Assembly (NCBI GenBank): GCA_002269645.1
Contig: NIVC01004978.1
Location: forward strand, 1 to 29,701
DNA: 29,701 bases
Source: Macrostomum lignano
Taxonomy: Eukaryota
Direction of reading: 5' to 3'
The notes under the pieces are model-generated. The model worked only from the letters and a program-made list of their open reading frames with translations, had not been told where the DNA came from and searched no databases. The translations under genes and the position numbers were made by a program. Below are positions 945-29,467 of this stretch, one piece after another (positions within the stretch are counted from its first letter, which is position 1; each line of letters begins with the position of its first letter).

Positions 945-3900
945 TGATGTGTGCGCGGTAGCCTTGGTCAGGTTGCCAGGGATGTGATGGGTGTTGCGTC
1001 ACTCCGTCCACATTAGCCATTCAGCTGTGACGTCTAAGGCGCAGTCCCCGTTACGAACCGAGTTTTTCAGAGTCGGATTGGCAGACCACCTCACCTTCCT
1101 CTCTTTTCAACGGGCTTGCGCCCGGATTTGGCGAAATTGCGGCTATATATTGAAGGCTGTGCCGTCGTCTCATTAGCGTTAAAGTAGAGAGAACTGCCAA
1201 TAGAATGCACCAGAAACCACAAGTAGAACCAAAATCAGCCTCATCCTTTTAGGATTGGGACTTGTTGTTCTTCCGCAGCCGACTGGGCAGCCGCATGCAT
1301 CCAGCTGAGCACAGGTTGGCTCGAGTCTCCGCATCTGTTTCCGGCCGCATCGGGAAGCTGATCAGAGCCGAAAGCTGCTCACTGCAATCCGTGAAGCTCA
1401 CCAGCCCGAGTACTCACCATCAATGGTAAGATTGACAGCTCTGAGTGAACCACAGGAGACTGAGGAGTTCGTACTCTGGACGGTATGGTTTCTGGAATCC
1501 AAATGTCAAGAGTTGTGAAATTTGATTTAATAAGCCAGCCTATTGTTCTGACAGCAGATAAACTGCTATTCTCAAGTTCAAGAAACTCACAGCTTATCAG
1601 CATCCTCGAACTCAGCTATTTTGCAGTCTTCTGCCCCGCAGTTCAGGTAGAAGACCTTCTTGGTCCTGTGCTCATAGAACAGTCCGATGCGAAGCCTCTG
1701 TGCGAGATTCAGCGGCTCCTTGCTGCGGGTGCTCAGGCCGGAGCCGACGCGAGTTCGCTGGCCTGAAGCCGGTGTTCAAGTGGAGTGAAATTGTGCAAGA
1801 GTTAAGCTGTGCTGCCTACAGCTAAAACTGATGTGCATTTATTGCTTAACAATGATATTGTTCATGTTAGTCCTCACTACTGCGAGTAAGATTAGCTCAT
1901 GAGAGTAGCCATGCGATATTTTATGGCAGATCCTGCCTCTACTGTGTTTAATTTTCACTAGTCTAAAAAGCCACCGGTTCACTCCAGCTTACTCTCTGTA
2001 ACGAAGTTCTTCAGAGTCGTGGAGCTGTTGAAGCTGGCGAGCCTCATGACTCCGCTGTCAGCCCTCATCGCAGCCGCCAGCTCAGCAGTCAGGTTCCGAC
2101 GAACCGATCCTTTGGTGTAGCAGTTGCTCTCAAAATTAGTCATGCTTCTGCGCAGAATCCGGCTCCATCAGCCGAATATGTAGACCCGGAATATTCACTG
2201 AGCTTCTCCGATTCAGCCGGAATGAGACAGTCAGGAGCTCCTACAGTTTGATGTAATGTATTGTGATTGAATTTTAAGTAAGAAATTGATTTAATAAAAT
2301 TGTGTCCAGCATCGGGCCAGCTCTATCGTACCCTTTCGTCAGTTGCAGCACGCGAAGCATCTCCAGCTCCACGGGCTTTGGCTCGCTTGTTGAAGGCGAC
2401 GAGCAAGTCGCTGGAAATGCATTGGGGTTCGCATTGCCAGGGTAAGAATCGAAGTGTTTGACTGGTTTTATCGAGTTCCAGCTGGCAGTAGCAGCGTGGG
2501 TAAAAACCCACTGACTGCTTGTTCACAGATGCCATTCGACAACTGCTTACTTTAATAATAATAATATAATAATTGATTACACCTGCCCAATGGGCAGATG
2601 TGCAACCGACAGCTCAGCCGCAGCTATTGCGCGGCGCGTCTGAAGCTGCGTACGGCTGTTCAGTCCAAAGACTGCGGTTCGACACACACCCTCACTTATC
2701 CCAGCTAATGCTGGCACCCATTTTACAGCTGGGTGAACTGAAGCAATGCAGAGTAAAGTGTCTTGCTCAAGGACACAAATTGTTCCAGTGGGATCGGGAA
2801 TCGAAACTGCGACCTTCACGTTGTGCGTCCGACGCTCTAACCACTAGGCTACAACCCTAGACCATTACAACTGCCTTGAGTCAGCTATACTAGGCATTTA
2901 TGCAAAGGCGTGAAGTTTGATTTCATAATCACTATTATTATCAACTCTCTTTTCGTTGGCGACCAGACGGCTAAAATTGATGCTCTAAAGGCCTGCTGTC
3001 TTCTTCAACAATTAACATTATTGCACAGCTTATAGAATATTCTCTAATTGTGATCAAAGCGCTGCTTACCGTCCGAAGCCTTCGAGTGCAGTTCGTATCG
3101 CATCGGTTGTTGCTGTGCAGCTGAATCCACAGATTTTGTCCGCCTCCACTCGTTTACGCGAGCCTCCGTGTCAAAGCCAGTCAGAACCACAACGGAATTG
3201 TCAAGGTGGTCAGTCAGAATCTTCCATTTGCAGTTGAGCCCTTCCTCAGGCACAGGGTCCGCGTCAGCTTTGGGAATGATTCGATCTTCAATGAACTCGA
3301 GTTTTTTGCTGAGCTGGAACTCATTGGTGTTGCCACGCGGATAGCAGTACTGGTTGCCTGCCAGAGCTCTAAAGAAAAAAGGGCGGGAAAGTAGATTTAT
3401 TGTAAATGGACACTCAAAAGTTACTGGAAGGCCCACTTAAGATTTGGTCTACTAAAAACGTTATTTTCTGAGCTATTATTGGCAAAATGTGTTGTTGATT
3501 ATATGATTAATTGACTTTTCGGTCGGTACTTCAGTTATTTCTCCCATACCGACCTGTAAAAAGAAAACGTTTTATATTTTAATAATGTATAGAATGTATA
3601 GTAATATATTATTATCATTAGCTATGCTCTATACGCATGTACGTGTAGAAATGCCATCGATTTTGGGGCAACATTCTAGCGGAATTCAATACGATAAAAT
3701 GGGTGAGTATCTACTTACCATCCTACTGATAAGTAGAAAGACAAGAAAATATCGCGTGTAGAACAAGTTCTGTTTATCCAGCTACAGCACTATGATATAA
3801 TCCAATTAACTTTCGTACATTAATGTACATTGACAGCGCAAGCCTCGCAAGGACAGGTCCCCAAAGAACAATCCCACAGCGGGCAGCCCCACAAAGGACA

Positions 3901-4094
3901 GCCCCAATTAGTATGGCGCCCCCAGAGTAGCATCCCAAAACATTCTGCCTACCTTTAAGCAAATGTTAATCCGCAAAAAAATCCCAGTTGGTTTAATGAA
4001 TGAAGCGTCGCATCACTCACATTTGAAATGTGGCAGACAGCAGCAGAAGAGTCGCCAGGCTTCTGCCCATCACTATCTGCAGATTCAGTCGCAT
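945..4094 (-). pseudogene. Paralog A: SP-CUB-like-CTLD-like-TM receptor, frameshifted as assembled (pseudogene or consensus errors)
   Basis: Exons (minus): 4021-4094, 3070-3368, 2332-2410, 1993-2240, 1591-1762, ~945-1491, all with GT-AG ends. Exons 1-3 and 5 are open and nearly identical to paralog C. Exon 4 has three 1-bp deletions relative to C, and the first gives an immediate TGA (G AGC TCC TGA). Exon 6 has several more 1-bp deletions and a 7-bp deletion next to the TM. The position homologous to the C stop (945-947) reads TCA. Confidence 0.8.
2553..2857 (-). mobile_element. tRNA-derived CORE-type SINE in intron 2 of paralog A
   Basis: Minus strand shows box A TAGCCTAGTGG and box B GTTTCGATTCC. 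The segment GTGTCCTTGAGCAAGACACTTTAC...CTTCAGTTCACCCAGCTGTAAAATGGG resembles the MIR/CORE domain, followed by a (TTA)n-like tail. An imperfect flanking direct repeat CCATT(CG)ACAACTGC lies at 2532-2546 and 2862-2874. Absent from intron 2 of B and D. Confidence 0.85.
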
Positions 4095-4169
4095 GTCGGA
4101 CGCTTCCGGCACCTAAAAATCCCGATGTGAGGTGGACGCTGCATGCAGGAGATTCTGTGTCCGCTCAGC

Positions 4170-4196
4170 ATTTATAGGTAAAGACGTGAAACTGCC
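4170..4196 (-). promoter_or_regulatory. Putative core promoter of A: TATA box CCTATAAAT plus conserved GGCAGTTTCA motif
   Basis: TATAAAT lies 76 nt upstream of the ATG. Both motifs recur with nearly the same spacing in the otherwise diverged upstream region of B. Confidence 0.55.
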
Positions 4197-4716
4197 GAAC
4201 AAGCTGGATATTCGTAGATGCCATCAAAACTTCTTGTACACGTACGAGCGTACTTCTAATCACTTCTAATCGCTTAGCAATCCGATTTCTGTTTTAGTAC
4301 CCGGATGTAGTGACAGTTAACTTGGCTTTTTGTTAACCCAACCCTGAGACCAAGGAATTTCACATGCAATAAGCGTCTTGATTTGACTTTTTATTTGATT
4401 TTAAATATAATATTGCATCTGGTGAGACAGGCTCAGTCTTTGCTCTGACTTACATGAGCAAAATTACATTCTAGTGACTCTAATGAACCCCTGTAGCTAT
4501 GATACTACATGCAAAGAAAGTAATCAGGTACGTTGAATTCAAAAATAATTTTGCAACAGAAGTACAATACACACAGCCCCTAAGGACTCGAGAACGGGAA
4601 TGCCTGTTAATCGAACGATGGTAGAAAATTCTGCGGTAACAAAAAATATTTTGTTTAACATTCTTAACCATTTTTGCTTCCTTCTATCTGATCTTTCCTT
4701 AAACAAATCTCATTTG

Positions 4717-6712
4717 ACAAAAAAGGACTCTTAACATTGCCATCAAATTATGCTCAAATTTCTTAAAAATTATGGCAACTAAGTGTGCACGAAACTAAAC
4801 TCACTGTCCATGTGGACTCACACTCACCAAGAGATGTTGGCCAACTCCAACTTCTTGCAGACTTTATAAGAGAAAATTTAGGAGGGGAGCACCGTGGAAA
4901 ACCCATGATTTTATAGGCCAAGCCGCGGTAACTCTCAGGAAGATCCAAGTGAAACCCACGGCTTATCCGCGGTGAATTTTCTCTAAAGCAGCGAGTTTTC
5001 CCTCCTTTCAAGTACAACTAAAAGGCAATTCCATGTCTCTCCATGGATAGTCAGTAGAATTGTTAAAGTAGGGTTGAATTATAGGAGTGCAGGTGTATGC
5101 GTGCGCACAGTTGCCGCCCTGTACCATACTATTGTACGTAGCATGCGAGGAAAGAGAAGCAGAGGACGCACGCTCGATCTGTATCGTGCATGCGCTTTCA
5201 GACCAAGCGTGCACTGTTCATTATATGCCGCATAATGTCAGTGCTGTGCAAAAAAGGGGACTTTAGTTTACCGAGAACTTGGAGTTCTTTATTTTTTGTT
5301 CTTTCTAAAGGTGTGAAATAAAAAAATTACATGCATACAGATCCCACAAATAGTTCGTAAACAATAATAGCCTGCCGTTCAGCTCAAAGCAGTCAACTGC
5401 AGGGAATAAAATAAAAATTACAAGCAAGTGACATTGGGTCTGGCGGATGTCCTTATTGTCGAAGTTAAGAGACTAAAATTTTCTTTATGGGTTCTATCGG
5501 GATTCACAAGGTTTTTCAAAATGTATTTATGATTTCTTCTTTTAGTTTATTTCAACAACGAGCAGTGCGAGCTAAAAGTACTGTGGTGCAGAAACAGCTT
5601 GAGTATTAGTTTCATAGCTCTCATTTAGTCTTTTTTGGTGGAAAACTTTAGCTAGAACTTTAGGATATGTTCCACATTATCTCGATTCTGCATTCCCCAG
5701 ATTTTAGCTCGTACATTCCCCCAGATTTTACGTTCCCGCAGCTTTCACATTCCTAAGATTTGCATCTCCCAGATTTCACATTCCTTAAATTTTACATTCC
5801 TCCAATTCTACATTTCTTAGATTTCACTTTCTCCAACTTTTACATTCCACGAATTTTGCACCCCCAGCTTTCACATTTCGCAGATTTTGCTTTTCTCCAT
5901 GTTTCACATTCCCAGATTTTGCATTCCTCCATATTTTACATTCCTAAGATTTCAAATTCCTAAGATTTCAAATTCCTATGATTTCAAATTCCTAAGATTT
6001 CAAATTCCTAAGATTTTACATTCCACAGATCTTACATTCCCCAAATTACACATTCCCAGATTTCCCGGCGTCGCAAGGAAACAACAAGATACGCTGTCAG
6101 AGTCCTTTGACGGTAGCAGCACAAGTCGCAAAGAAAAGCCACGTCGCCGATTGAATCCGGGGCGCCGGCGTCAGACAGCAGGCTGGAGACAAGGCGCGAA
6201 CCCGCGATACGTGCATGGGACAGCTTGATTTTGCCAGCCGCTCTCACCCCATGTACGCAAGGCGAACCCCAGAGCTATTTTTAGCAACACATCTGTATAG
6301 TGCCATTTGAATGTGAAAGTGCAAGAGGATTCTCTGGTCTGTGTTGAACGCTCTTTAATTTTTAAACGTTTGCGTTATTAACAAGTTTTTTCTGTTATCT
6401 TCTGCTTGCATGGCAGAAAGACTTTCAAACACTCTGGCCTGTAAAGGCTCTATTATGAGTGAGGCCCAAATCTCAGAATTCGCAGCACAGAATATTCAAA
6501 GCAGGGTATTTGATAGTCAACAGGAACGCATAGGCACAATGCAAAAATGCATAGTTTGAGTGTAGCGTTACAGCTCAACGAAGTTTCTCTCTGTGCCCTG
6601 CCCTCAACGCATTTTGTTGGGAGTCTTCTGTGTCACGCGTTCGCAGGCTGCTGGCTGCTGCAGCCTCTAATCTCGGAAACAGTTATTAAAAAAATAAACA
6701 ATGCTGAAAATT
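4717..6712. repeat. ~2 kb upstream block shared by all three spacers (homologs 15113-16891 and ~22621-24620)
   Basis: Begins acaaaaaa(a)ggactcttaaca in each copy and stays collinear with the B-upstream copy through the minisatellite. It is moderately diverged in the B spacer. It is either part of the ancestral duplication unit or an unclassified non-autonomous element. Confidence 0.8.
5688..6063. repeat. 16-bp minisatellite, consensus ATTTCACATTCCYMAG, roughly 23 degenerate units
   Basis: Visible periodicity, including a homogeneous run of atttcaaattcctaag at ~5949-6012. Confidence 0.9.
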
Positions 6713-8049
6713 AAACGGAATGAAATGAAATTTCATTGCCATGTGCATGCTATATGCGCTAGTAAATTTATTACATTTTTGATGGGTTTCGACCTTTGGG
6801 CTCCTTGTTAGGGAAGCCTTCGGGCCTCAGGCTCAGAAATAAATCAATTAGAGCCCTGGCCCCCCACTCCTGTCAGATGGTCAGCCCCATGGTAGCTTGA
6901 TCGTGTGGCGAGCAGTCTTGGTCCTATAGCTAAGAGAGGGACAGCGAGAGACAAGCAGGGAGAATTTTGAAGGTAGAAATTAGTTAATCCGCAGATTAGC
7001 TAACTCGCTGCCACCAGCCCGTACGTCCTGGCTCACCACACCGGGACTCTCGAAATCGGGCTTCCGACTAGAAGGGGCTTTGCACTTACCTTGCAACTAG
7101 TGTCTTTTTGCTGTCAATCTCGAAGTCATAGCCGATGATAAGGGACACTGCTGGGACTAGATCGCATTGGCCATGCAGGTACAGAGGGGACTTGTGCAGG
7201 GGATTCTTGCAGTGGCGAGTCTATGGGGTAGCTACATGTACTATTACATTGCTAAATACGAAGATATGTACTTTTGGCCTTCAACGCGCCAACTAGCCTA
7301 TCATAGCGCTGATGATAGGCTAACTCGAACTTCAGAGACCTCGCATGATTCATTTACCCGAGCCGCTTGGCTACCCTAGAGTGCACAAAGTACATCTCTG
7401 GCGCCGATTCTGCACTTCTGGCAGTTTTGCTCACTGATTTGATAGATTGGTCGACTGAGAACCGCCTTGCCATTGGTCCACTGTGACCGGCGCCTACTAG
7501 CTTAGCTACTCATCTGAGCCATCGGCGAACAAAGAAATAAAGCCGATAAAAATAACTGTTAGATTTAACCTTCTCCTTAGATCACTTCACACCTCAGATT
7601 GAATTGGAGTTTTAGACTACTAGCAGTATTATTGAATGATTTCTGCCTCAGCAACAGCACTTATTGAACAAAATGAGCAAAAGTGTGCGCCTAATTCAGC
7701 TACTGAAAAAGGGGACAGATAAGGGATCACCCAATCAAGCAAGTCTAGGTAGCCTCTCACCCAACCAATCAGAAACTCAACAGCCGGAGACCAGGTAATC
7801 CACAGTGACCGAATCGGCTTGATGCTCTGCAGCTGTAGACTCGGGATGATGCTGTCACAATCTTCGCTGTTAGCTAGCAGGTGATGCTCTTCACTTGATG
7901 TTCGCTGCTGATGACCGGGGGACTCGTCCTTGATGATGATGGGGGGGAAGTCGCAATCCGGGGATCAAGAAACGACGGTCAGGCTCCGGGAGGTCTCAAG
8001 CTAGGCCAAGGTCCCAGGAGGTTGAGGTCCGAGCGGGCCAAAAACACCG

Positions 8050-8185
8050 GTTTAAATAGCCGCCAACTGGACCGCAGTTTGTTATAATGGAACACGTTGA
8101 TTCTGATTGGCTGAGCCGTTTTGTTAAAATGAGCGCCGAATTTTCTGATTGGCTAAGCTTGTTGCTACCCATAATCACGTGACCG
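8050..8185 (-). promoter_or_regulatory. Promoter-like cluster (two AGCCAATCAG NF-Y-type boxes, CACGTG E-box, TATTTAAA) in an unidentified spacer insert; duplicated at ~25957-26092
   Basis: ttctgattggct occurs twice (~8101 and ~8142), tcacgtgac at ~8175 and tttaaatag at ~8051. The layout resembles an LTR U3 or a Pol II promoter, but no LTR termini or TSD could be confirmed. Confidence 0.4.
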
Positions 8186-9378
8186 AGAGATCCTATCAGT
8201 TCCCACAGGGTCGTAAAAAGATGACAGATGCGGCCATAAATCAATCAAAATCGCAACAAAATGATTTATGACTTTTCGCGTAGGATTGACAGAAATTGAT
8301 GAAAAAATATACATTAGCAAGCTCTTATTAAATAGAAAGTGAAGATAATGAAGAGAAATTGCTAATCGCTAATCCCAAGGTACTTTTAGGGGTAAAACGC
8401 ATAGCTGTCAAAGCTGTCACACGCTTGAGTGAACACGAACAATAGGCTCTGACCTCATAAATCTTGATGGCCTGTCAAAATGATGAGAAAAAAGCTACCG
8501 CCCGCATCCTCTCAGACCATCTGGCACCCGCCTAAACACTGAGTGAGGCGCAGGTGGCTGTCAGACCAGCTTCGAAAGCGATGATTTATGACCCAAAAAG
8601 CTGCGCCTATGTTATTATGACTACTAGTATGACCAAACATTATATCTAGTATAGATTCTATGACAATTAACAAAAAAGGATAAAATGCCCACTGCCCACT
8701 GTTAGTAGGCTGGTAAAGTTAGAGCCCATGTGCTAGCGCGGGATTTGGATTCATCATTTTCATGACAAAACGTAAATTTCGCAAAAGGGTTACAGTTAAA
8801 ATGGTTAGATTAGTAGGTACAATAATTTTGTTAAAATAATTTTGCAGGCTTTGAATTTACCTACTAATACTATTAATACCCAAAATTGTCCATGCGCTCG
8901 TTTTTTCACCACTGTTTAATTCAGCAACAAACCAAGCAGTCAATCCTTATTGCACACATCTTTCGCGTTAGTGCAGTGAAAACATCAAAAGATGTGTGGA
9001 TGGATAAGGTAAAGTAGTAAATGAATTATAAACAAATGAAATATTTATAATATTTACAGCGATTACCGCATTTATAAAGCAGAAAAATTGTTGCATATTA
9101 GTGACAGCATAAGTGTACAGTGATCACTCGCATATAACAGCTAGCGAACTTCTCACTCAATCCTCGTAGTTCATTCTTAGTAAAGCTGCTAACACTTAGT
9201 TAACACCAGCAACAAAATCATAAAATATTGTCTGTTGAATCTTCAAACCAGTCATTACCGGATGCGTCCGATGAGAAGTGAAGCTGGATTTCGAGCAAAC
9301 AGACTCCATAACTATTAATGATTTTGTCTCTTTTGCAAGCGCGGATATTGGCTGATCAAAGCGAGATGATTGGCGTGA

Positions 9379-12300
9379 CTAAATGAGAGCTGGTCGGCTT
9401 TCAAGCTGTTTTATGTGCGTGCTGTAGCCAGAATGAACCAGAGGTTTTTGGGCGTCGGATTGGCAGGCCCCCTCAGGCCCTCCTCCCTTTTCAACGGGGC
9501 CTGGGACCGTCTTTGGCGAAGCTGCTGCTTCACGTTGAAGGCATTGCAGTCGACTCACAAAAATTAGCGTTAAAGTAGAGAGAAATAACAATAGAATCAA
9601 ACCAGCAGCCACAAGTTGAACGACAATCAGCCTCATCCGTTCAGGACTGGGACTTGTTTGCTCTTCTTCCGCAGCCGGCTGGGCAGCCGCAAGCATCCAG
9701 TTGAGCACAGGTTGGATCGAGTCTCCGCATCTGTTTCTGGCCGCATCCGGGAAGCTGATCAGAGCCGGAAGCTGCTCACTGCAGTCCGTAAAGCTCACCA
9801 GCCCGAGTACCTCACCATCAATGGTAAGATTGACAGCTCTGAGTGAACCACAGGAAACTGAGGAGTTCGTACTCTGGACGGTATGGTTTCTGGAATTAAA
9901 GTGTAAATAGTTGTGAAATTTGATTTAATTAGCCAGCCAATTGTTCCGACAGCAGATAAACTGCTATTCTCAAGTTAAGAAACTCACAGCTTATCAGCAT
10001 CCTCGAACTCAGCTATTTTGCAGTCTTCTGCCCCGCAGTTCAGGTAGAAGACCTTCTTGGTCCTGTGCTCATAGAACAGTCCGATGCGAAGCCTCTGTGC
10101 AAGACTCAGCGGCTCCTTGCTGCGGGTGCTCAGGCCGGAGCCGACGCGAGTTCGCTGGCCTGAAGCCGGTGTTCAAGTGGAGTGAAATTGTGCAAAAGTT
10201 AAGGTGTGCGGTCTACAACCCAAGGTAAACAGCGATGTTCAGTAAAGGACACTGCATGCGTTCAATAAGCTGGCAATGAAAACCATTTCTAAGTTACTGC
10301 AGGCGAGGAATTTACACATCTCTCGTGCGTACTGCTCCTATTGTGGGTTTTGCGGCGGTTTAACATAACGGCTTTGTGGGCCTGAAACTTGTGAATATTA
10401 TTCGATAATAATATGAAAACTATCGATATAAAAGTAAGTGCAGGACAACTTTATGTTTCTGATTATAGCGCTATCTGGTATCATGGGCCATATTATTGAT
10501 GCTGTGTGAAGCATGCATATTGCAAAAATTATGTAGCTTAGGCCATAGGAGCTTGGGGTATGAGATGCAACAGCAAATAAAACGAAGCAGGTTTGTAACT
10601 TGAAAACTTTATTGAAATACGAGCGAATTTGGAAATGCAGTTTTTAATTTGCATTAATTATTATTAATTAATTTGAAAATTCGCCAATTAATTCGGCTTA
10701 AATTACCTACAGAGTGTGATTAAACCTTTTAATCATTGTCTTGATTATGATTGGCAATCTGGTGAAAAATGTTTTTTTTCAGTGGCGAAAATGAGCATTT
10801 TTGAGCAATTGTTCAAATTTGATGCATACGCTCGTACACCGCAGCACAATTATCAAGGCAAAACTTCTGGCAACGCATGCATTCTTTCTTTACCTGCGCT
10901 GTTACGTTGTAATAAGCTTTAAATATTGATTTGGTACTGACATGGCGGGTACAAGACCTGAATTTACCAGTTTTCTTGACCCGAAATGTTACTGTACTCT
11001 AAAATTTGGTGATAGACTTCAAGTTGATTCAATGCAAGCTGCACGCCACAGACATTAACCGTAGGAATACCTCAGGGAATTTCTCAGTTAAAATTTCTCA
11101 GGGAAAGGCTCATTTGCACTCATTCTCAGGAGCCATTAAATTCAATAGCTAATGTGCAATGGAATATAGAATTTTACTTCATTTGATTGCAATTTAAATA
11201 AGCTTTTGTAGTGTAATTTAAGGTGCTATTTCTAAGATGGCTTTGTTTTTATCCCTAATCCATTCCTGACATGCATGTAGTATATTGAGGGAAGTTCACT
11301 AACACAGCAGCACTCAGCCCTGTTTTAAGATATATAGTCTTCATGTACTAGTAATTCGTACATTATTGTTTCATTTCGCTAAGTGTTTGTAAAGCCACCG
11401 GTTCACTCCAGCTTACTCTCTGTGACGAAGTTCTGCAGAGCCGCGGAGCTGTTGAAGCTGGCGAGCCTCATGACTCCGCTGTCAGCGCTCATCGCAGCGA
11501 GCTCAGCAGTCAGGGACCGACGAACCGATCCAGTGGTGTAGCAGCTGCTCTCAAAATTAGTCACATTTCTGCCGCAGAATCCCGGCTCCATCAGCCGAAT
11601 TCTCAGAGTCGGGATATTCGCTGAGCTTTTCCGATTCAGCCGGAATGAGACCGTCAGGTAGCTCCTACAGTTTTTATGTAGAGTGCAGTGGTTGAGTTCA
11701 ATTACAGAATTATAGATCTCAGAGAATTGGCCAGCTCTATCGTACCCTTTGGTCAGTTGCAGCACGCGCAGCATCTCCAGTTCCACTGGCTTTGGCTCGC
11801 TTGTTGAAGGCGACGAGCAAGTGGCTGGAAATGCATTGGGATTTTTATTAGCAGGGTGAGAATGAAAGCATTTGCTGTTTTTATTAAGTACCAGCTAGCA
11901 TGGGTCAAAAACTACTGACTGCTTGTTTACGGTAATGGTTAGAACTGGAAATCGAAACCAATACTACATGTACGAGTATAATAGCAAGTTTAACTGTGCT
12001 CAAAGTTCTGCTTACAGTCCGAAGCCTTCGAGTGCAGTTCGTATCGCATCGGTTGCTGTGCAGCTGAATCTACAGATCTTGCCCACCTCCGCTTGCTTTG
12101 GTGAGGCGCCGTGTCAAAGCCAGTCAGAACCACAACGGCTTTGTCAAGGTGGTCAGTCAGAATCTTCCATTTGCAGTTGAGCCCTTCCTCAGGCACAGGG
12201 TCCGCGTCAGTTTTAGGGATGATTCGATCCTCAATGAACTCGAGTTTTTTGCTGAGCTGGAACTCATTGATGTTGCCACGCGGATAGCAGTACCGGTTGC

Positions 12301-13042
12301 CAGCGAGAACTCTGGGAGAAGAATAGAAAAGTAGCTTTGCTGTTGTAAAATAGATATTGTAGTTTAAAACTACGGAAGGGTCACTCCCCTTTGTTAAAAA
12401 ATCGGACTTGTTAGGATATTGTGGGAGAATTGTTTCAATGAGGTAATTTATTGGTTCGTCGGTTCAGTTATTAATCGCACACTGACCAGAAACCAATAAA
12501 TATCTGTACTCTACGCATTGGAGTAAGGACGCGCGATCGATTTAGCGATAAAATTAATATTTTTACCAATTTCAAAACGATAAAGAGATGAGTTCTTACT
12601 GTCCTACTGATAGTAGAAACACAAGAAATGGCGTGCAAAAAGACTTGCTGTTTTGCAGCTACAGTATTAAGATATAGGCCTAATCAAATTAAAATTCATA
12701 CACTGCAAGCACCATTCTCGTTAAGGACAGCCCTCCAAAGAACTGTGCAGCAAGGACAGCCTCACAAAGGACAGCCTCCAAACGAACGAACGACTGCGCT
12801 CCAACAGTATGACACCCCCACCAATCAGTATTATGCCCCAAGCATGGCGCCCCCATGCAGTGTGACATCCAAAAGCATTCAACCCACCCTAAGCAAAAAA
12901 CCTGATTCCGCTCAGAAATCCCAGTTGTGGCTAATTTGGTGCAAGAAATTAAGCTGCGCATCACTCACAGTTGCAGTGCAGCAGACAGCAGCAGAAGAGT
13001 CGCCAGGCTTCTGCCAATCGCTATCTGCAGATTCAGTCGCAT
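9379..13042 (-). CDS. Paralog B: type-I membrane protein with signal peptide, CUB-like domain, CTLD-like domain, TM and 59-aa tail (459 aa, 6 exons)
   Basis: Exons (minus): 12969-13042 (MRLNLQIAIGRSLATLLLLSAALQ, donor GTGAGT), 12016-12311 (VLAGNRYCYPRG...NCKWKI...VVLTGFDT..., donor GTAAGC), 11746-11824, 11417-11664 (GSYLTVSF...FCGRNVTNFESSCY...RLASFNS), 9988-10159 (...LRIGLFYEH...), 9379-9889 (CGSL...FTDCSEQLPALISF, TM LIVVQLVAAGLILLLFLSTLTLIF). Total 1380 nt in frame with consistent phases. CUB and CTLD are assigned by eye from motif spacing. Confidence 0.85.
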
Positions 13043-13119
13043 GTCGCTCACTTCCGGCACCTAAAAATCCCGATTAGGGTTAGATGCAGTATGTAGAGTC
13101 TGTTTCTTTCTGCATCAGG

Positions 13120-13144
13120 ATTTATAGGGAGGCTTGAAACTGCC
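13120..13144 (-). promoter_or_regulatory. Putative core promoter of B (CCTATAAAT; GGCAGTTTCA)
   Basis: 78 nt upstream of the B ATG; conserved with A and C amid divergent flanks. Confidence 0.55.
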
Positions 13145-13706
13145 CATAAGAAATTTGCATTAAAATCAAAGTACTTGTACGTGAGGTATATTAGTACTCG
13201 TATTTATTAATTGGACTAAATTTCCAAGATTTTTGTGTAATGCATTGCACCAACTGTAAAATTCGCTGGGTGGGGTCACCTACCTAACTATGGTCCCCCC
13301 AATCATAAGTACATGAATACATGTACTACTAACTTTTGCACTCTGATTTATGTCCTCATATCGAATGTAGGGACAATTACATGACTCTAGTCCAGTTTTA
13401 AACTCCAGGAACTCTAGCTGCAAGCAATAAAGTACGTATGGATTTTTTATCAGTATGAAATTTTTGGATTGTGAAAGAGGGAACAAAAATTTTAATTGGG
13501 GTCAGACAAAAAGCGCCAGTTCAATTGCTTGGAATAAGTTGTTGGGCTGAGCCACGCGGTAGCCCCGCTAGGCACCCCCTTTTAACAACAAAAATTTTTG
13601 ACTAAATTTTGCAGAGGCTAAAAACTTCTTTTGTACGTTCGTAATACGCTTAATTTTAATTTCGATCTAGCGAAATTTTAACCTTATGAAGTCTCTTGCT
13701 AGAGTT

Positions 13707-14017
13707 CAGTTACGGCGCAGGGGGGAGGGGGCAGGGGGGGCAACTGCCCCGGGTGACCACGGTCACTGTCTCAAGGGGGGGGGTGACGACCCCACCATCC
13801 CCACGGCCCTAGAAAAGACCCTAGGAATGGAGGGAGATGGTCACCCCTGTAATGCAACTTGCATCAATGATTAAAAATGCATTTTTATAAGAATTTTCGT
13901 GTTGTAAATTCGTTTTGTAAGAAGTGTGACCGCCTTGTAAGGGTAAGGGTTTAATTGTAAAGGGGTGACCACCTAACTACTGCCCCCCCCCCAACCAGAG
14001 ATACTGCGCTACCACTG
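13707..14017. mobile_element. MITE-like element with degenerate CAGT...GCGCAG termini and G-rich subterminal tracts
   Basis: Left end CAGTTACGGCGCAGGGGG; reverse complement of right end CAGTGGTAGCGCAG...GGGGGGGGC. Flanking 8-mers match 5/8 (ctagagtt vs cttaagct). No coding capacity. Confidence 0.5.
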
Positions 14018-14082
14018 CTTAAGCTTTCAATGTTCTAAAATTTCAACCCTGTAAAGTTTCGACCTATAGTGAGATAATTTAC

Positions 14083-14128
14083 TTTTCGACGTTGTGAAAT
14101 TTCGACGTTGTGAAATTTCGACCTTGTG
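14083..14128. repeat. Short tandem repeat, 16-bp unit (aaatttcgacgttgtg), about 3 copies
   Basis: tttcgacgttgtgaaatttcgacgttgtgaaatttcgaccttgtgaaa is directly visible. Confidence 0.85.
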
Positions 14129-14921
14129 AAAGCACCCCCCCCTTACAGTGCACGTCTGGCACAAACCCGCGTAAACAGCCCTAGGCTCGTTCTCTTGAGG
14201 TTTTCTTTCGTGCAACAGAACAATATAACAGTATGCATGTATAATTACGAGTATATAAAAAATCTATTTTGAAACGTCATCTGATTTCCAAATGTGTTTG
14301 TTCGATTATATTGCATGTATCATCGAAGATGCTGCCGCAACGCAATAATGGTTTGCTGACATCGGTCTGACGCTCGTAGTTCGTCACATTGCTGTACGAC
14401 GAACTCCATCGATTGTTTTTAAATTAAAAAACAAAAAAAATTTTTTACGATAACGAGTAAATTTAAAAAAATAAAACCAACTTATAAATGTATTTATTGC
14501 GCAAAAACCTAGCTCATATAAGTTTTCTAAGTTAAGCGCAGATACCGCTACCAGGTTTTCCACGAAAATTCCAAACAGGGATTTTAATATATTTATTTGA
14601 CTTAAAATGAAATGTACGAGTAGCAGCTAGCAAGTAATCATGGTTCACTCGACCATAATTATACTTGAATGCTTGCTATACTCTAATGACCCGAGTAGTT
14701 ACATGAATGAGCATGATATATCATATATTACAGTGAAAATCCATCCGCGCATCCATCGAATTCAGCAATACGATATATGTACGAGCATGTACTGTATATA
14801 GCCCAATATGCAAGGCCTCGCGAACAAAAAACTGTTAGTTTAATTACGTAAAATATAAAATCTAGGAGCTTAGAAAAACTTTTGACATTCTTTACTCATA
14901 CTGTAGCTATCTTATCTAGCT

Positions 14922-15101
14922 CAGTTGCGGATCCAGAAATTTTTGTACGGGGGGCGCAGACTACTAAGGTGCATGTTTGTGCATATCATTTACACGTATA
15001 TGTAGCTACCTGAAAATGTGTACTTTTCATATAAAAAAATAAAAAATCAAACTCGACGGGAGGGCCGCGCGCCCTGTAAATCCCCTCTAAATCCGCTACT
15101 G
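14922..15101. mobile_element. 180-bp MITE-like element with CAGT(T/A)GCGGAT terminal inverted repeats
   Basis: Left CAGTTGCGGATCCA; right reverse complement CAGTAGCGGATTTA. GC-rich subtermini in an AT-rich background. Confidence 0.6.
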
Positions 15102-15999
15102 ATTCTAACTTAACAAAAAAGGACTCTTTAACATGGCCATCAAATTATGCTCAAATTTCTTGAAAACTATGGTAACCAAATGTGCTCACTCACTGTCCAT
15201 GTGGACACATACTCACCAAGAGATGTTGGCCAATTTACAACTTCTTGTAGACTTTATGAGAAATCTTATGAAGGGAGCACCGCGGAAAAGCCATGATTTT
15301 ACAGGCGAAGCTGAGGTAACTCTGTGGCAGATCCAAGTAAAACCCAAGTAAAACCCACGGCTTTTCCGCGGCAAATTTTCTCTTAAGCAGTTGGAGTTTG
15401 CCCTTTTTTCAAGTACAACTAAAAGGCAATTCCATGGCTCTTCCATGGAAATTCAGTGAGTAGAATTGTTTAAATAGGTTGGAGTATGGGTGTATGCGTG
15501 CGTTGTTGCCGCCCTTTACATCACCATTGTACGTAGCATGCGAGGAAAGAGAAGCAGAGGACGCACGCTTGATCTGTACTGTGCATGCGCTTCCAGACCA
15601 AACATGCACTGTTCTCTGTACGCCGCCCAACGCTGTACAAAAAAGGAACTTCAGTTTTTCTGTGAACTTTAGAGTTCTTTATTTATTGTTCAAAGCCCAA
15701 AGGCAAAGCAGTCAATTGCAGAGAATGATTACAAGCATGTGACATGCATAGGGTCCGGCGGATGTCACTGTCGTCGAAGTTAAGAGACTAAAATTGTCTT
15801 TATGGACTCTGTCCGGATTTACAACGGTTTTCAGAATGTATTTATGAATTATTTTTTAGTTCAGTTCAACAAATGCGATCAGTGCGAGCTAAAAGTACTA
15901 AGGTGCAGAAACAGCATGAATATAAGTTTCGTCGCTCTCATTTGGTCTTTTTGGTGGAAACTTTAGCTAGAACTTTAGGGTAGGTTTTACATTTTCTCG

Positions 16000-16182
16000 A
16001 TTCTACATTCCCCAGATTTCATATCTCCCAGATTTCACATTCCCCCAGATTTTACATTCCCTCAGATTTCACATTCCCCAGGTTTTGCTTTCCTCCATGT
16101 TTCACGTTCCTAAGATTTCACATTCCCCAGATTTTACATTTCCCAGATTTCACAATTCCAAATTATAAATTCCCAGATTTCC
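16000..16182. repeat. Shorter copy of the 16-bp minisatellite (roughly 11 units) upstream of B
   Basis: Same unit (atttcacattccccag) with the same homologous flanks as 5688-6063. Confidence 0.85.
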
Positions 16183-18820: not shown

Positions 18821-21800
18821 TTATGTGTGCGCTGTAGCCTTGGTCAGGTTGCCAGGGATGGGTGCTGCAGGGTGTTGCGTCACCCCATCCACATTAGGCC
18901 ATTCAGCTGTGACGTCTAAGGCGCAGTCCCCATTGCGAACGAGAGGTTTTTCAGAGTCGGATTGGCAAACCGCCTCAAACCTTCCTTCATTTTCAACCGG
19001 GCTTGGGACCGGATTTGGCGAAATTGCTGCTGTATATTGAAGGCTGTGCCGTCGTCTCCTATAAATTAGCGTTAAAGTAGAGAGAACTGCCAATATAATC
19101 GCACCAGAAACCACAAGTAGAACCAAAATCAGCCTCATCCTTTTAGGATTGGGACTTGTCTGTTCTTCCGCAGCCGACTGGGCAGCCGCATGCATCCAGC
19201 TGAGCACAGGTTGGCTCGAGTCTCCGCATCTGTTTCCGGCCGCATCCGGGAAGCTGATCAGAGCCGAAAGCTGCTCACTGCAATCCGTGAAGCTCACCAG
19301 CCCGAGTACGTCACCATCAATGGTAAGATTGACAGCTCTGAGTGAACCACAGGAGACTGAGGAGTTCGTACTCTGGACGGTATGGTTTCTGGAATCCAAA
19401 TGTCAAGAGTTGTGAAATTTGATTTAATAAGCCAGCCTATTGTTCTGACAGCAGATAAACTGCTATTCTCAAGTTCAAGAAACTCACAGCTTATCAGCAT
19501 CCTCGAACTCAGCTATTTTGCAGTCTTCTGCCCCGCAGTTCAGGTAGAAGACCTTCTTGGTCCTGTGCTCATAGAACAGTCCGATGCGAAGCCTCTGTGC
19601 GAGATTCAGCGGCTCCTTGCTGCGGGTGCTCAGGCCGGAGCCGACGCGAGTTCGCTGGCCTGAAGCCGGTGTTCAAGGAGAGTGAAATTGTGCAAGAGTT
19701 AAGCTGTGCTGCCTAAAGCTAAAACTGATGTGCATTTATTGCTTAACAATGATATTGTTCATGTTAGTCCTCACTACTGCGAGTAAGATTAGCTCATGAG
19801 AGTAGCCATGCGATATTTTATGGCAGATCCTGCCTCTACTGTGTTTAATTTTCACTAGTCTAAAAAGCCACCGGTTCACTCCAGCTTACTCTCTGTAACG
19901 AAGTTCTTCAGAGTCGTGGAGCTGTTGAAGCTGGCGAGCCTCATGACTCCGCTGTCAGCGCTCATCGCAGCCGCCAGCTCAGCAGTCAGGTTCCGACGAA
20001 CCGATCCTTTGGTGTAGCAGTTGCTCTCAAAATTAGTCATGCTTCTGCAGCAGAATCCCGGCTCCATCAGCCGAATATGTAGACCCGGAATATTCACTGA
20101 GCTTCTCCGATTCAGCCGGAATGAGACAGTCAGGTAGCTCCTACAGTTTGATGTAATGTATTGTGATTGAATTTTAAGTAAGAAATTGATTTAATAAAAT
20201 TGTGTCCAGCATCGGGGCAGCTCTATCGTACCCTTTCGTCAGTTGCAGCACGCGAAGCATCTCCAGCTCCACGGGCTTTGGCTCGCTTGTTGAAGGCGAC
20301 GAGCAAGTCGCTGGAAATGCATTGGGGTTCGCATTGCCAGGGTAAGAATCGAAGTGTTTGACTGGTTTTATCGAGTTCCAGCTGGCAGTCAGCAGCGTGG
20401 GTAAAAACCCACTGACTGCTTGTTCACAGATGCCATTCGACAACTGCTTACTTTAATAATAATAATATAATAATTGATTACACCTGCCCAATGGGCAGAT
20501 GTGCAACCGACAGCTCAGCCGCAGCTATTGCGCGGCGCGTCTGAAGTCTGCGTACGGCTGTTCAGTCCAAAGACTGCGGGGTCGACACACACCCTCACTT
20601 ATCCCAGCTAATGCTGGCACCCATTTTACAGCTGGGTGAACTGAAGCAATGCAGAGTAAAGTGTCTTGCTCAAGGACACAAATTGTTCCAGTGGGATCGG
20701 GAATCGAAACTGCGACCTTCACGTTGTGCGTCCGACGCTCTAACCACTAGGCTACAACCCCTAGACCATTACAACTGCCTTGAGTCAGCTATACTAGGCA
20801 TTTATGCAAAGGCGTGAAGTTTGATTTCATAATCACTATTTATCAACTCTCTTCGTTGGCGACCAGACGGCTAAAATTGATGCTCTAAAGGCCTGCTGTC
20901 TTCTTCAACAATTAACATTATTGCACAGCTTATAGAATATTCTCTAATTGTGATCAAAGCGCTGCTTACCGTCCGAAGCCTTCGAGTGCAGTTCGTATCG
21001 CATCGGTTGTTGCTGTGCAGCTGAATCCACAGATTTTGTCCGCCTCCACTCGTTTACGCAAGCCTCCGTGTCAAAGCCAGTCAGAACCACAACGGAATTG
21101 TCAAGGTGGTCAGTCAGAATCTTCCATTTGCAGTTGAGCCCTTCTTCAGGCACAGGGTCCGCGTCAGCTTTGGGAATGATTCGATCTTCAATGAACTCGA
21201 GTTTTTTGCTGAGCTGGAACTCATTGGTGTTGCCACGCGGATAGCAGTACTGGTTGCCTGCCAGAGCTCTAAAGAAAAAAGGGCGGGAAAGTAGATTTAT
21301 TGTAAATGGACACTCAAAAGTTACTGGAAGGCCCACTTAAGATTTGGTCTACTAAAAACGTTATTTTCTGAGCTATTATTGGCAAAATGTGTTGTTGATT
21401 ATATGATTAATTGGCTTTTCGGTCGGTACTTCAGTTATTTCTCCCATACCGACCTGTAAAAAGAAAACGTTTTATATTTTAATAATGTATAGAATGTATA
21501 GTAATATATTATTATCATTAGCTATGCTCTATACGCATGTACGTGTAGAAATGCCATCCATCGATTTTGGGGCAACATTCTAGCGGAATTCAATACGATA
21601 AAATGGGTGAGTATCTACTTACCATCCTACTGATAAGTAGAAAGACAAGAAAATATCGCGTGTAGAACAAGTTCTGTTTATCCAGCTACAGCACTATGAT
21701 ATAATCCAATTAACTTTCGTACATTAATGTACATTGACAGCGCAAGCCTCGCAAGGACAGGTCCCCAAAGAACAATCCCACAGCGGGCAGCCCCACAAAG

Positions 21801-21998
21801 GACAGCCCCAATTAGTATGGCGCCCCCAGAGTAGCATCCCAAAACATTCTGCCTACCTTTAAGCAAATGTTAATCCGCAAAAAAATCCCAGTTGGTTTAA
21901 TGAATGAAGCGTCGCATCACTCACATTTGAAATGTGGCAGACAGCAGCAGAAGAGTCGCCAGGCTTCTGCCCATCACTATCTGCAGATTCAGTCGCAT
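18821..21998 (-). CDS. Paralog C: type-I membrane protein with signal peptide, CUB-like domain, CTLD-like domain, TM and 79-aa tail (480 aa, 6 exons)
   Basis: Exons (minus): 21925-21998 (MRLNLQIVMGRSLATLLLLSATFQ), 20970-21268, 20232-20310, 19890-20140, 19488-19659, 18821-19388. Total 1443 nt, fully open, intron phases 2-1-2-1-2, canonical donors and acceptors. TM LILVLLVVSGAIILAVLSTLTLIY is followed by stop-transfer RRRRH. Confidence 0.88.
20454..20760 (-). mobile_element. tRNA-derived CORE-type SINE in intron 2 of paralog C (duplicate of the copy in A)
   Basis: Nearly identical to 2553-2857 and at the same intron position. Confidence 0.85.
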
Positions 21999-22073
21999 GT
22001 CGGACGCTTCCGGCACCTAAAAATCCCGATGTGAGGTGGACGCTGCATGCAGGAGATTCTGTGTCCGCTCAGC

Positions 22074-22100
22074 ATTTATAGGTAAAGACGTGAAACTGCC
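22074..22100 (-). promoter_or_regulatory. Putative core promoter of C
   Basis: Identical to the A promoter. Confidence 0.55.
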
Positions 22101-23595: not shown

Positions 23596-23971
23596 CTGCA
23601 TTCCCCAGATTTTAGCTCGTACATTCCCCCAGATTTTACGTTCCCGCAGCTTTCACATTCCTAAGATTTGCATCTCCCAGATTTCACATTCCTTAAATTT
23701 TACATTCCTCCAATTCTACATTTCTTAGATTTCACTTTCTCCAACTTTTACATTCCACGAATTTTGCACCCCCAGCTTTCACATTTCGCAGATTTTGCTT
23801 TTCTCCATGTTTCACATTCCCAGATTTTGCATTCCTCCATATTTTACATTCCTAAGATTTCAAATTCCTAAGATTTCAAATTCCTATGATTTCAAATTCC
23901 TAAGATTTCAAATTCCTAAGATTTTACATTCCACAGATCTTACATTCCCCAAATTATACATTCCCAGATTT
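23596..23971. repeat. 16-bp minisatellite upstream of C
   Basis: Duplicate of 5688-6063. Confidence 0.9.
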
Positions 23972-26900: not shown

Positions 26901-27387
26901 GGAAGGATAGGGTAAAGTAGTAAATGAATTATAAACAAATGAAATATTTATAATATTTACAGCGATTACAGCATTTATAAAGCAGAAAAATTGTTGCATA
27001 ATAGTGACAGCATAAGTGTACAGTGATCACTCGCATATAACAGCTAGCGAACTTCTCACTCAATCCTCGTAGTTCATTCTTAGTAAAGCTGCTAACACTT
27101 ATTTAACACCAGCAACAAAATCATAAAATATTGTCTGTTGAATCTTCAAACCAGTCATTTACCGGATGCATCCGATGAGGAAGTGAAACTGGATTTCGAG
27201 CAAACAGACTCCATAATTATTAATGATTTTGTCTCTTTTGCAAGCGCGGATATTGGCTGATCAAAGCGAGATGATTGGCGTGACTAAATGAGAGCTGGTA
27301 GGCTTTCAAGCTGTTTTATGTGCGTGCTGTAGCCTTTGTCAGGCTACCAGGGAAAGGTGATGGGTGTTGCGTAACTCCATCCACATT

Positions 27388-29467
27388 TTAGCATTCAGCT
27401 GCGACGTCTAAGGCGCAGAATGAACCAGAGGTTTTTGGGCGTCGGATTGACAGGCCCCTCAGGCCCTCCTCCTTTTCAACGGGGCTTGGGACCGTCTTTG
27501 GCGAAGCTGCTGCTTCACGTTGAAGGCATTGCAGTTGTTTCATAAAAATTAGCGTTAAAGTAGAGAGAAATAACAATAGAATCAAACCAGCAGCCACAAA
27601 TTGAACCATAATCAGCCTCATCCGTTCAGGACTGGGACTTGTTTGCTCTTCTTCCGCAGCCGGCTGGGCAGCCGCAAGCATCCAGTTGAGCACAGGTTGG
27701 CTCCAGTCTCCGCATCTGTTTCTGGCCGCATCCGGGAAGCTGATCAGAGCCGGCAGCTGCTCACTGCAGTCCGTAAAGCTCACCAGCCCGAGTACCTCAC
27801 CATCAATGGTAAGATTGACAGCTCTGAGTGAACCACAGAAGACTGAGGAGTTCGTACTCTGGACGGTATGGTTTCTGGAATCCAAATGTCAAGAGTTGTG
27901 AAATTTGATTTAAGTAGCGAGCCAATTGTTCTGACAGCAGATAAACTGCTATTCTCAAGTTAAGAAACTCACAGCTTATCAGCATCCTCGAACTCAGCCA
28001 TTTTGCAGCCTTCTGCCCCGCAGTTCAGGTAGAAGACCTTCTTGGTCCTGTGCTCATAGAACAGTCCGATGCGAAGCCTCTGTGCGAGATTCAGCGGCTC
28101 CTTGCTGCGGGTGCTCAGGCCGGAGCCGATGCGAGTTCGCCGGCCTGAAGCCGGTGTTCAAGTGGAGTGAAATTGTGCAAGAGTTAAGCTGTGCGGTCTA
28201 CAGCTAAAATTGATGTGCATTTATCGCTAAACAGTGATATTGTTCCTGTTAATTCTTACTACTGCCAGTAGGATAAACTCAACGAGTAGCATTGCGATGC
28301 TTTATTTCTGATTCTATCTTACTGGCTTGAAGTTTTGTTAAGTGTTCAGAAACCAACCGCTTCATTTCAGCTTACTCTCTGTTACGAAGCTCTGCAGAGC
28401 CGCGGAGCTGTTGAAGCTGGCGAGCCTCATGACTCCGCTGTCAGCGCTCATCGCAGCCAGCTCAGCAGTCAGGGACCGACGAACCGATCCTGTGGTGTAG
28501 CAGTTGCTCTCAAAATTAGTCATGTTTCTGTCGCAGAATCCCGGCTCCATCAGGCGAATTTGTAGACCGGGATATTCGCTGAGCTGCTCCGATTCAACCG
28601 AAATGAGACAGTCAGGTAGCTCCTACAGTTTCGTGTAGAGCACAGTGATTAGTTTGGAGTAAGGAAAAGATTTTTTAAAAATAGTTCAGCATCGGGCCAG
28701 CTCTATCGTACCCTTTCGTCAGTTGCAGCACCCACAACATCTCCAATTCAACTGGCTTTGGCTCGCTTGTGGAAGAGCAAGTCGCTGGAAAGTTCAAGTT
28801 TCATTGGGAGTTGACTGCTTTTATCGAGTACCGGCTAGAAGTCTGTATCTGTAGTGTGGCACTAAAACCTACAGACTTCTCGCACACACTTGCCATTAAA
28901 CAAGTACAGACTTCACTACTGCACTATGCATTTATGCGTCGCGTGAAGTTCGTTTTTGTCATCTCTACTATTTGTTTTCAACTTCCTTAAACTGTATAAA
29001 GCCTTCTGTTGGTAATTAACTGAATGAACGTCAATAAACCGCTTTTAGATGTTCTGTTTCTAGCTCGTAGCAAAAGACTAACTGCATGCGAACAGGAAAT
29101 ACAAGTTAGAACTGGACAAAATTAAATATTATAATATATCTGTAATTGTGCTCGAAGCTTGCTCTACTTACAATCCGAATCATTCGAGTGCAGTTGGTAT
29201 CGCATCGGTTGATGTTGTACAGGTGAATCCACAGATCTTTTCCACCTCCGCTTGCTTAGGTACGCCTTCGTGTCAAAGCCAGTCAGAACCACAACGGCTT
29301 TGTCAAGATGGTCAGTCAGAATTTTCCATTTGCAGTTGAGGCCTTCCTCAGGCACGGGCTCTCCGTAAGTTTTAGGTATGATTCGATCCTCAATTAAATC
29401 CAGTTTTAAGCTGAGCTGCAACACAGTGATGCCACGCGGATAGCAGTAATGGTAGCCTGCCTGAGCT
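27388..29467 (-). pseudogene. Paralog D (5'-partial, exon 1 beyond window): same receptor family, with a 1-bp frameshift in exon 4 and a truncated tail as assembled
   Basis: Exons (minus): 29172-29467, 28712-28784, 28376-28622, 27973-28144, 27388-27874. Exon 4 is 247 nt, 1 nt short in a C-run (tgtagaccggg vs tgtagacccgg in C), giving a premature TGA. Exon 6 has two 1-bp C-run deletions relative to B and an in-frame TAA at 27388. It could be an intact gene with sequencing errors. Confidence 0.75.

Follow-up and report, generated by a model that had tools for sequence, protein, structure and literature searches.

What keeps eleven consecutive codons changing among neighboring gene copies while the sequence just upstream of them hardly changes, and what might such a segment do? 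The question is raised by a stretch of 29,701 nucleotides from Macrostomum lignano (contig NIVC01004978.1 of assembly GCA_002269645.1), analyzed at its full length and called the window below. It holds four tandem same-strand units of ~9 kb, copies A to D, each carrying one six-exon gene, and exon 2 of each gene contains a short variable loop, which in all four copies is coded on the minus strand. An earlier note on this DNA had described the loop as hypervariable, with exclusively non-synonymous changes, and had attributed the pattern to positive selection on a ligand-contact loop at the surface of a CUB domain. Our analysis confirms a hotspot of replacement changes and adds a new element, a conserved basic core within the loop, for which the simplest reading is a processing site whose flanks diversify. 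The explanation we prefer, with about even confidence, is that this is a candidate furin-type processing loop (or basic patch), with flanks under diversifying selection and with variants moved among paralogs by gene conversion.

Re-reading the minus strand returned the coordinates and the loop sequences of A, B and D as first reported. The 11 substitutions that separate copies A and B affect 10 of the 11 codons and fall only on codon positions 1 and 2, leaving every third position unchanged; on either side of the loop, the two copies share the same peptides (VVVLTGFDT and SVDSAAQ). Copy C, the fourth loop of the window, had been absent from the earlier note; its loop is separated from that of A by a single change, CGC->TGC in loop codon 3 (window 21060). 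This change replaces Arg with Cys and adds an unpaired cysteine to the exposed segment. In all, 12 independent exon-2 copies carry nine loop haplotypes (Table 1). For the A–B pair the changes are indeed exclusively non-synonymous; over the 12 copies this does not hold, as there are two synonymous differences (GCT/GCG in codon 2 and CTA/TTA in codon 4).

Because the paralogs are mosaic, analysis on a single tree was avoided, and changes were instead counted as tree-free minimum changes among 11 full-length coding sequences and as pairwise Nei–Gojobori distances. The loop collects replacement and silent changes in the ratio 22:2, against 158:113 in the other 355 codons (Fisher P = 8e-4), and is the top 11-codon replacement window of the gene. 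Over 100,000 shuffles of the per-codon counts, the richest window held at most 21 replacements (mean 12.3), short of the 22 observed (P<1e-5), and a window scan permutation of the silent changes found no clustering (P = 0.25). Loop changes are split 11:11:1 among codon positions 1, 2 and 3 (P = 1.1e-3 versus equal rates), which argues against a mutational hotspot or pure neutrality. Replacements in the loop amount to 0.85 per non-synonymous (N) site, compared with a gene-wide silent count of 0.44 per synonymous (S) site (Poisson P = 0.004). For the A–B pair, the proportion of differences at N sites (pN) is 0.43 in the loop and that at S sites (pS) is 0, while pS is 0.10 in the rest of the gene and the short introns differ by 0.15; the loop pN exceeds the rest-of-gene pS at Poisson P = 9e-5 and the introns at 2.6e-3. 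Averaged over 55 pairs, the same four quantities are 0.237, 0.107, 0.128, and 0.18, and pN in the rest of the gene averages 0.056. The mean loop pN/pS is ~1.9–2.2, and only 1.3 against introns, so that the ratio of replacement to neutral change (omega) lies at ~1.3–2.2 depending on the neutral yardstick, with A–B as an extreme pair. We rate positive selection on the loop codons as likely, not established: the hotspot, the scarcity of silent changes and the codon-position split speak for it, whereas the excess of omega over all pairs is modest.

The 5' boundary of the loop is abrupt, in that the 30 codons upstream are nearly unchanged, with only 5 replacement and 7 silent changes. A stretch of ~90 nt immediately upstream (B 12200-12110, encoding EEGLNCKWKILTDHLD.AVVVLTGFDT) is almost invariant in the 12 copies, silent sites included, and directly adjoins the most variable codons of the gene. 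The end of a conversion tract, RNA constraint, and strong codon constraint are candidate causes. The second-richest replacement window of the ectodomain lies in exon 6 (B 9889-c.9790, alignment columns 313-323). It comprises two haplotype classes, NHTVQSTNSS...LTIDGEVLGLV and YHAVETTNSF...LGAGGEVLWRV, which are spread over the paralogs independently of exon-2 type.

The description of all 11 codons as a hypervariable loop captures the hotspot, but the C-terminal part of the loop is conserved. Loop position 8, the P4 Arg, is encoded by AGG in all 11 copies, and positions 5, 7, and 11 have two states each. In an alignment that includes subfamilies 31–35% identical, the P4 Arg (R100) and the Ser that follows the loop (S104) are invariant and the P1 Arg (R103) is 90% conserved, while P2 and P3 of the core are freely variable. 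The whole-protein alignment has only 26 invariant columns, with the P4 Arg and the Ser among them. The resulting pattern, R-x-x-R followed by Ser, occurs in 9 of 12 copies (as RWKR, RWAR, RSGR or RWTR), several of which show the canonical R-x-K-R form, and likewise in P0013, P0032, P0033, P0034, P0017, P0030, and P0035. The divergent subfamilies read RVAR, RVVR, or RLGR, as in P0013/32/33 (...LSLRRVAR/SAE) and P0034/17/30 (...YRQRLGR/SAE). Conservation of this kind suggests a motif for processing or basic binding more than it does free diversification, and would most simply be the signature of a minimal proprotein-convertase site, R-x-x-R then Ser-Val/Ala.

The predicted product has a signal peptide, an ectodomain of ~340 residues, one transmembrane segment and a short tail; within the ectodomain, an N-terminal CUB-like beta-sandwich is followed by a C-type-lectin-like module. 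The basic core lies downstream of the signal peptide and upstream of the transmembrane segment. An AlphaFold2 model of the related protein P0004, built from a 24-sequence family alignment, has a predicted local distance difference test score (pLDDT) of 60, with 70-84 in the N-terminal domain and values below 50 at residues 98-110. A model of the domain alone reaches a pLDDT of 72.5 and a predicted template modeling score (pTM) of 0.69. Its sole low-confidence stretch (pLDDT below 50) is HLSERRWKRSVDSAAQ, between the strands AVVVLTGFDT and MRYELHS. By these models the loop would leave the beta-sandwich between two of its strands as a flexible and exposed excursion, in agreement with the surface position that had been proposed for it.

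Loops are also decoupled from the introns and exons around them, so that loop variants are evidently being moved from one backbone to another. Copies A and L1g1 (a further gene of the same array) have identical loops and short introns that are 28% different. The introns of B and L1g2 are 1.7% apart, yet their loops are separated by four replacement and two silent changes at 6 loop positions. In genomic DNA, L1g1 is mosaic in its exons too, exon 2 being of A type and exon 6 of P0006 type.

If these strands of evidence are taken together, the 11 codons would encode the beginning of a long excursion, flexible and exposed to solvent, between strands (...VVVLTGFDT, loop, SVDSAAQQQPMRYELH...) of the CUB-like beta-sandwich at the N terminus of type I membrane proteins that are specific to M. 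lignano. Two layers could be distinguished within it. The first would be the constrained core, R-x-x-R, Ser, then Val or Ala, which is most likely a proprotein-convertase (furin-type) site; cleavage there would produce a two-chain ectodomain. A basic binding patch is a less likely alternative for this core. The second layer would comprise residues P11–P6 and P3–P2, which appear to gain replacements faster than linked silent sites within the subfamily, as might be expected if an exposed loop that serves recognition or processing were under diversifying selection. Gene conversion would then shuttle the loop variants among paralogs. What the data show is the hotspot with its codon-position asymmetry, the conserved core, the predicted exposure, the gene structure, and the restriction to one lineage; cleavage, the selective agent, and any ligand are inferences.

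Several observations weigh against a processing loop with positively selected flanks. Cleavage within a beta-sandwich is unusual. Copies A, C, and L1g1 carry RRTK, and Lys at P1 is expected to make a poor furin-type substrate; in this loop type, the W and R positions are also swapped relative to the family consensus. R-x-x-R occurs elsewhere in this Arg-rich protein (e.g., RLNR), so that by itself the motif counts for little. Among the most distant family members (P0022-P0025) the basic motif is missing and loop lengths differ, and the loop of the P0013 subfamily lacks hypervariability, with 3 differences over 12 positions at 68–85% overall identity; hypervariability is therefore a property of this window's subfamily. 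Changes counted in introns of 12 copies range from 0.6 per site (short, well-aligned intron 3) to 1.5 (doubtful alignment), and are not clearly below the 1.0 per site at loop positions 1+2. The loop rate at these positions is at most ~1.7-fold that of short, well-aligned introns, and does not exceed that of poorly aligned ones. The omega above 1 derives from crude counting over 11–12 recombining paralogs, with much of the signal contributed by two lineages, A-type (7 changes) and B (~6).

It is possible, though we consider it doubtful, that the loop is not cleaved and instead contacts ligands from the position of CUB loop L5, positively selected for different ligands, with its basic residues as a binding surface (e.g., a heparin/glycan patch of the B-B-x-B type). 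Such a role would fit the hotspot and the codon-position asymmetry equally well, and would accommodate the A-type loops, which keep a basic cluster (WRRTK) despite the loss of the P1 Arg. The motifs C-x-W-x-I and F-D-x-E would set the loop at the canonical CUB ligand/Ca2+ site, and so at the position of L5, in a register that comes from C-x-W and F-D-x-E rather than from a significant alignment (C-x-W-x-I is the only motif that aligns). The strictness of the P4 Arg, P1 Arg, and P1' Ser, together with free P2 and P3, fits a minimal convertase site more than a generic basic patch. The would-be Ca2+-binding Glu, the first residue of the loop, is also variable, being E, A, K, or V among paralogs.

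A contact loop of the CUB type further presupposes a CUB domain, for which homology could not be demonstrated from sequence. Pfam hmmscan (E<=10) returned no family for single exons, for full-length B and C, or for 9 relatives. PDB searches returned nothing with the spliced ectodomain sequence, nor (at E<=10) with a profile of the N-terminal domain. Aligned by hhalign to neuropilin CUBs, the family N-terminal domain gave a probability of 1.8%, with 15 columns aligned around C-x-W-x-I. The UniRef name 'CUB domain-containing' is an automatic label, and was not reproduced by the profile searches here. When folds were compared with the full-length model, Foldseek returned mostly CUB domains (E about 1e-4, template modeling (TM) score 0.5–0.57 per target), the best being neuropilin NRP2 a1 (6gh8; E 8e-5, TMt 0.54), with TSG-6, PCPE-1, Neto2, Kremen, C1r, and aSFP among the others. 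With the domain-only model there was no Foldseek match at E<=1e-3; the C-domain of Clostridium perfringens enterotoxin came first (E 2e-3), slightly ahead of any CUB (E 0.02–0.06, TM 0.40–0.52).

C33 and C71 (the Cys of C-x-W) are invariant and could be the canonical C1–C2 pair. For the second CUB disulfide, the sequence offers only C127, as a Cys is missing both ahead of the Y-E/D strand and at the 'fCG' motif. As for the Ca2+-binding triad, beyond the variable Glu, Y-D is replaced by Y-E and a third acidic residue is not evident (VSFRLN). Set beside CUB domains with a ligand- or Ca2+-binding L5 (C1r/C1s/MASP, cubilin, neuropilin a1/a2, PCPE-1, TSG-6 CUB_C, spermadhesins), the M. lignano domain shares a beta-sandwich of ~120–150 residues, an invariant Cys-x-Trp, an F-D-x-E just before the loop, and a place for CUB structures among its best fold matches (TM about 0.5). 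Unlike them, it has neither a Pfam, hhalign, or PDB-profile match nor a second canonical disulfide, and its loop is ~16 residues longer than that of neuropilin a1. The N-terminal domain is thus best called a CUB-like beta-sandwich, with its fold weakly supporting CUB membership. The outright assignment to the CUB family is not upheld, since none of the sequence tests recovered it and the fold match is no better than that to the enterotoxin beta-sandwich.

It is unlikely, in our judgment, that positive selection is absent altogether. The loop would then be a disordered linker, relaxed except for its basic core, and conversion would have homogenized the other exons, leaving the loop to show an older, true divergence. 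Active conversion is indeed indicated by the mosaic paralogs. Intron divergence (0.6–1.5 changes per site, against 0.44 at exonic silent sites) equals or exceeds that at loop positions 1+2, and the mean loop pN, 0.24, is above the intron distance by a factor of only 1.3. However, neutrality would have third positions varying like first and second positions. At the intron rate ~11 third-position changes would be expected in the loop, and 1 is observed (P = 1e-3 for the split). For the A–B pair, loop pN also lies above the intron distance of the same two copies (P = 2.6e-3), and counts for the longer introns are inflated, since parts of these introns cannot be aligned.

A purely mutational origin of the clustered differences, with no selection on the protein, appears improbable, whether by a hotspot at this site, by multi-nucleotide events, or by patch conversion in which the donor was diverged or ectopic. 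The A-type lineage invites such an account, as seven changes in 9 codons fall on this single lineage, including a reciprocal CGG/TGG swap 6 bp apart, and two codons are changed at two positions. Nevertheless, neither the window nor ~190 kb of family loci contains an ectopic donor of A- or B-type loop sequences, there are at least nine distinct loop haplotypes rather than two, and unselected mutation would not be expected to produce the codon-position asymmetry or to keep the basic core. A sequencing or assembly artefact is hardly credible: the window assembly does contain many 1-bp indel errors, but these are not substitutions, the loop types recur on other contigs, and an independent, older assembly of the same species has the same exon 2, base for base, in both A and B, so that the sequence of the loop is reproducible.

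Known cases of a furin-type processing loop within a folded ectodomain are the Notch S1 site in the heterodimerization domain, the Sema domain of MET/RON, and the insulin receptor. The M. lignano loop resembles them in having R-x-x-R or R-x-K-R followed by Ser-Val, in its predicted flexible and exposed position within a protein of the secretory pathway, and in the conservation of the P4 and P1 Arg with variable P2 and P3. It differs in that the site is putative and three copies have Lys at P1. To our knowledge, hypervariable flanks among paralogs are not a described feature of the Notch, MET/RON, or insulin receptor sites.

A second comparison is with tandem, lineage-specific receptor families that have positively selected exposed loops, such as the C-type-lectin-like natural killer (NK) receptors, the spermadhesins, and invertebrate recognition gene arrays. 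At least 10 same-strand tandem paralogs with further clusters, conversion mosaics, a C-type-lectin-like module, and a replacement excess confined to one predicted exposed loop are all reminiscent of such arrays. Unlike them, the M. lignano family is unrelated by sequence, and its variable loop is built around a conserved basic core. More speculatively, and with only slight confidence, this receptor array may diversify the residues around a conserved processing site such that each paralog is cleaved by, senses, or evades a different protease or partner. If so, it would be a recognition system (in immunity, self/non-self discrimination, or gamete or mating interactions in a hermaphrodite) with specificity in a cleavable loop and not in a binding pocket. 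Research on regeneration and sexual selection uses Macrostomum lignano as a laboratory model, in which most lineage-specific genes are without known function and RNA interference and in situ hybridization are routine. A loop that pairs rapid amino-acid turnover with a conserved basic core is therefore a concrete and cheap experimental handle.

The family itself is newly defined here as an uncharacterized group of M. lignano proteins in tandem arrays, with receptor-like architecture and one sharply bounded variable loop; we found no paper on it. The spliced B protein retrieves nine M. lignano proteins at 74–93% identity, none of which has a precomputed Pfam domain; NCBI labels them 'hypothetical' and UniRef names them 'CUB domain-containing protein'. 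When 1.84 billion representative proteins were searched exhaustively with HMMER, there were 21 matches, reaching down to ~22% identity, and the real ones are all from M. lignano. A bacterial match, P0021, with 9 matched stretches, was discarded as a low-complexity false lead (SpaA and similar proteins, no CUB). As far as the searched data reach, the family is lineage-restricted.

The second ectodomain module shows weak but consistent similarity to C-type lectin-like domains (CTLDs). A family profile of this module matches CD69 (E 0.005), MRC2, NKG2A, and DC-SIGN, and CTLDs make up 25 of the 28 matches listed, with only the N-terminal ~50 residues aligning. The module, encoded by exons 4-6 (B 11664-9700), has the pattern C..F..CY...LASF.S..E..FV...RIGL and was not detected by Pfam.

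Introns are GT-AG with consistent phases throughout, and the reading frames of B (459 aa) and C are open over their whole length (Table 1). After joining of contigs, the array has at least 10 genes, in the order P0007g, P0008g, D, C, B, A, L1g1, L1g2, L1g3, and one further upstream, and two additional gene clusters of the family lie on other contigs.

Table 1. Loops, genes, exons, and indel sites in the window, with loop haplotypes of further family copies (positions are those of the window)
Feature	Position	Strand	Sequence or remark
Loop core, copy B	12074..12088	-	R-W-A-R then Ser (R-x-x-R/S); candidate proprotein-convertase site or basic patch
Variable loop, copy B (11 codons, exon 2)	12077..12109	-	GCG CCT CAC CAA AGC AAG CGG AGG TGG GCA AGA = APHQSKRRWAR
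Variable loop, copy A	3134..3166	-	GAG GCT CGC GTA AAC GAG TGG AGG CGG ACA AAA = EARVNEWRRTK (also L1g1)
Variable loop, copy C	21034..21066	-	EACVNEWRRTK
Variable loop, copy D	29236..29268	-	KAYLSKRRWKR; RWKR/S is a canonical R-x-K-R motif
Loop, P0004g and P0007g			EAHLSERRWKR (consensus)
Loop, P0006g			ETHLSERRWKR
Loop, L1g2 and L1g3			EAHLSQRRWAR
Loop, P0008g			EAHASERRWTR
Loop, P0005g			VAHLSVRRSGR
Loop, protein P0035 (beyond the 12 exon-2 copies)			EAHVKQQRWTR
Copy B exon 1 (start codon, signal peptide)	12969..13042	-	exon 1–exon 2 junction agrees with independent gene models P0001, P0002-P0008
Copy B exon 2 (first half of CUB-like beta-sandwich; contains loop)	12016..12311	-	AG/GT borders, phases; alignment to annotated M. 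lignano proteins
Copy B exon 3	11746..11824	-	
Copy B exon 4 (end of N-terminal domain, start of CTLD-like module)	11417..11664	-	
Copy B exon 5	9988..10159	-	
Copy B exon 6 (remaining ectodomain, transmembrane segment, cytoplasmic tail, stop)	9379..9889	-	
Copy C gene (intact 480-aa open reading frame)	18821..21998	-	exons 21998-21925, 21268-20970, 20310-20232, 20140-19890, 19659-19488, 19388-18821
Copy A gene	1000..4094	-	exons 4094-4021, 3368-3070, 2410-2332, 2240-1993, 1762-1591, 1491-c.1000
Copy D gene, exons 2-6	27170..29467	-	exon 1 past window end
Indel sites, A exon 4	2237, 2161, 2152		
Indel sites, A exon 6	1414, 1352, 1207 and others		
Indel sites, D exons 4 and 6	28569, 27477, 27459		
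Indel site, C exon 2	21146		error on the side of the other assembly

The window corresponds to the ends of two contigs of GCA_002269645.1, NIVC01002507.1 (window 13870-29701, 99.9% identity) and NIVC01000712.1 (window 1-14095, 99.1% identity), which belong to the same locus. Over the 15.8 kb compared with the older assembly, 16 of 17 differences are 1-bp indels, and single-base indels fall mostly within short homopolymers. Apparent frameshifts had made copies A and D candidate pseudogenes. This was rejected, as the older assembly lacks the frame-breaking 1-bp deletions of A (exons 4 and 6) and of D, which have the appearance of errors in long-read assembly rather than of pseudogenization.

Public gene models of the array are unreliable, with P0002 and P0010 fusing exons from neighboring paralogs. 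The apparent combination in P0002 of an A-type loop with a B-type backbone was accordingly rejected as a recombinant, as the model spans 19 kb and two paralogs (L001 10001-29025). P0001 is a UniParc gene model and not transcript evidence. P0008g (L003 17396-20078) has an in-frame stop in exon 4 and a loop unlike that of protein P0008. For automated scans this locus carries a warning: indels can mimic frameshifts, and public models chimeric for neighboring paralogs can mimic recombinants.

Compared as whole units, A (586-9429) and C (18461-27334) have an identity of 98.7%, and of ~99.9% outside the 3' end of the gene, which points to a recent single-unit duplication of the A unit or a long conversion tract. 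These 8.9-kb units diverge sharply only over the last ~900 bp, the gene 3' end with the transmembrane segment and tail; for B and D, the units between and after them, the likeness is only 84–96%. Intron 2 of A (c. 2580-2860) and of C (c. 20480-20760) contains an insert of ~280 bp that is missing from B and D. Its head resembles that of a tRNA-derived short interspersed element (GGTTAGAGCG...GGTCGCAGTTTCGATTCCCGA), and neither ARAGORN nor Rfam returned a match to it. Intron 4 of B (10217-11391) holds ~1.17 kb missing in A, C, and D, where the intron is ~230 bp. Finally, the spacer downstream of gene units carries minisatellite arrays of a 16-bp unit, ACATTCCTCAGATTTC, in 11–22 copies with ~71–76% matches (5713-6064, 15999-16181, and 23620-23971).

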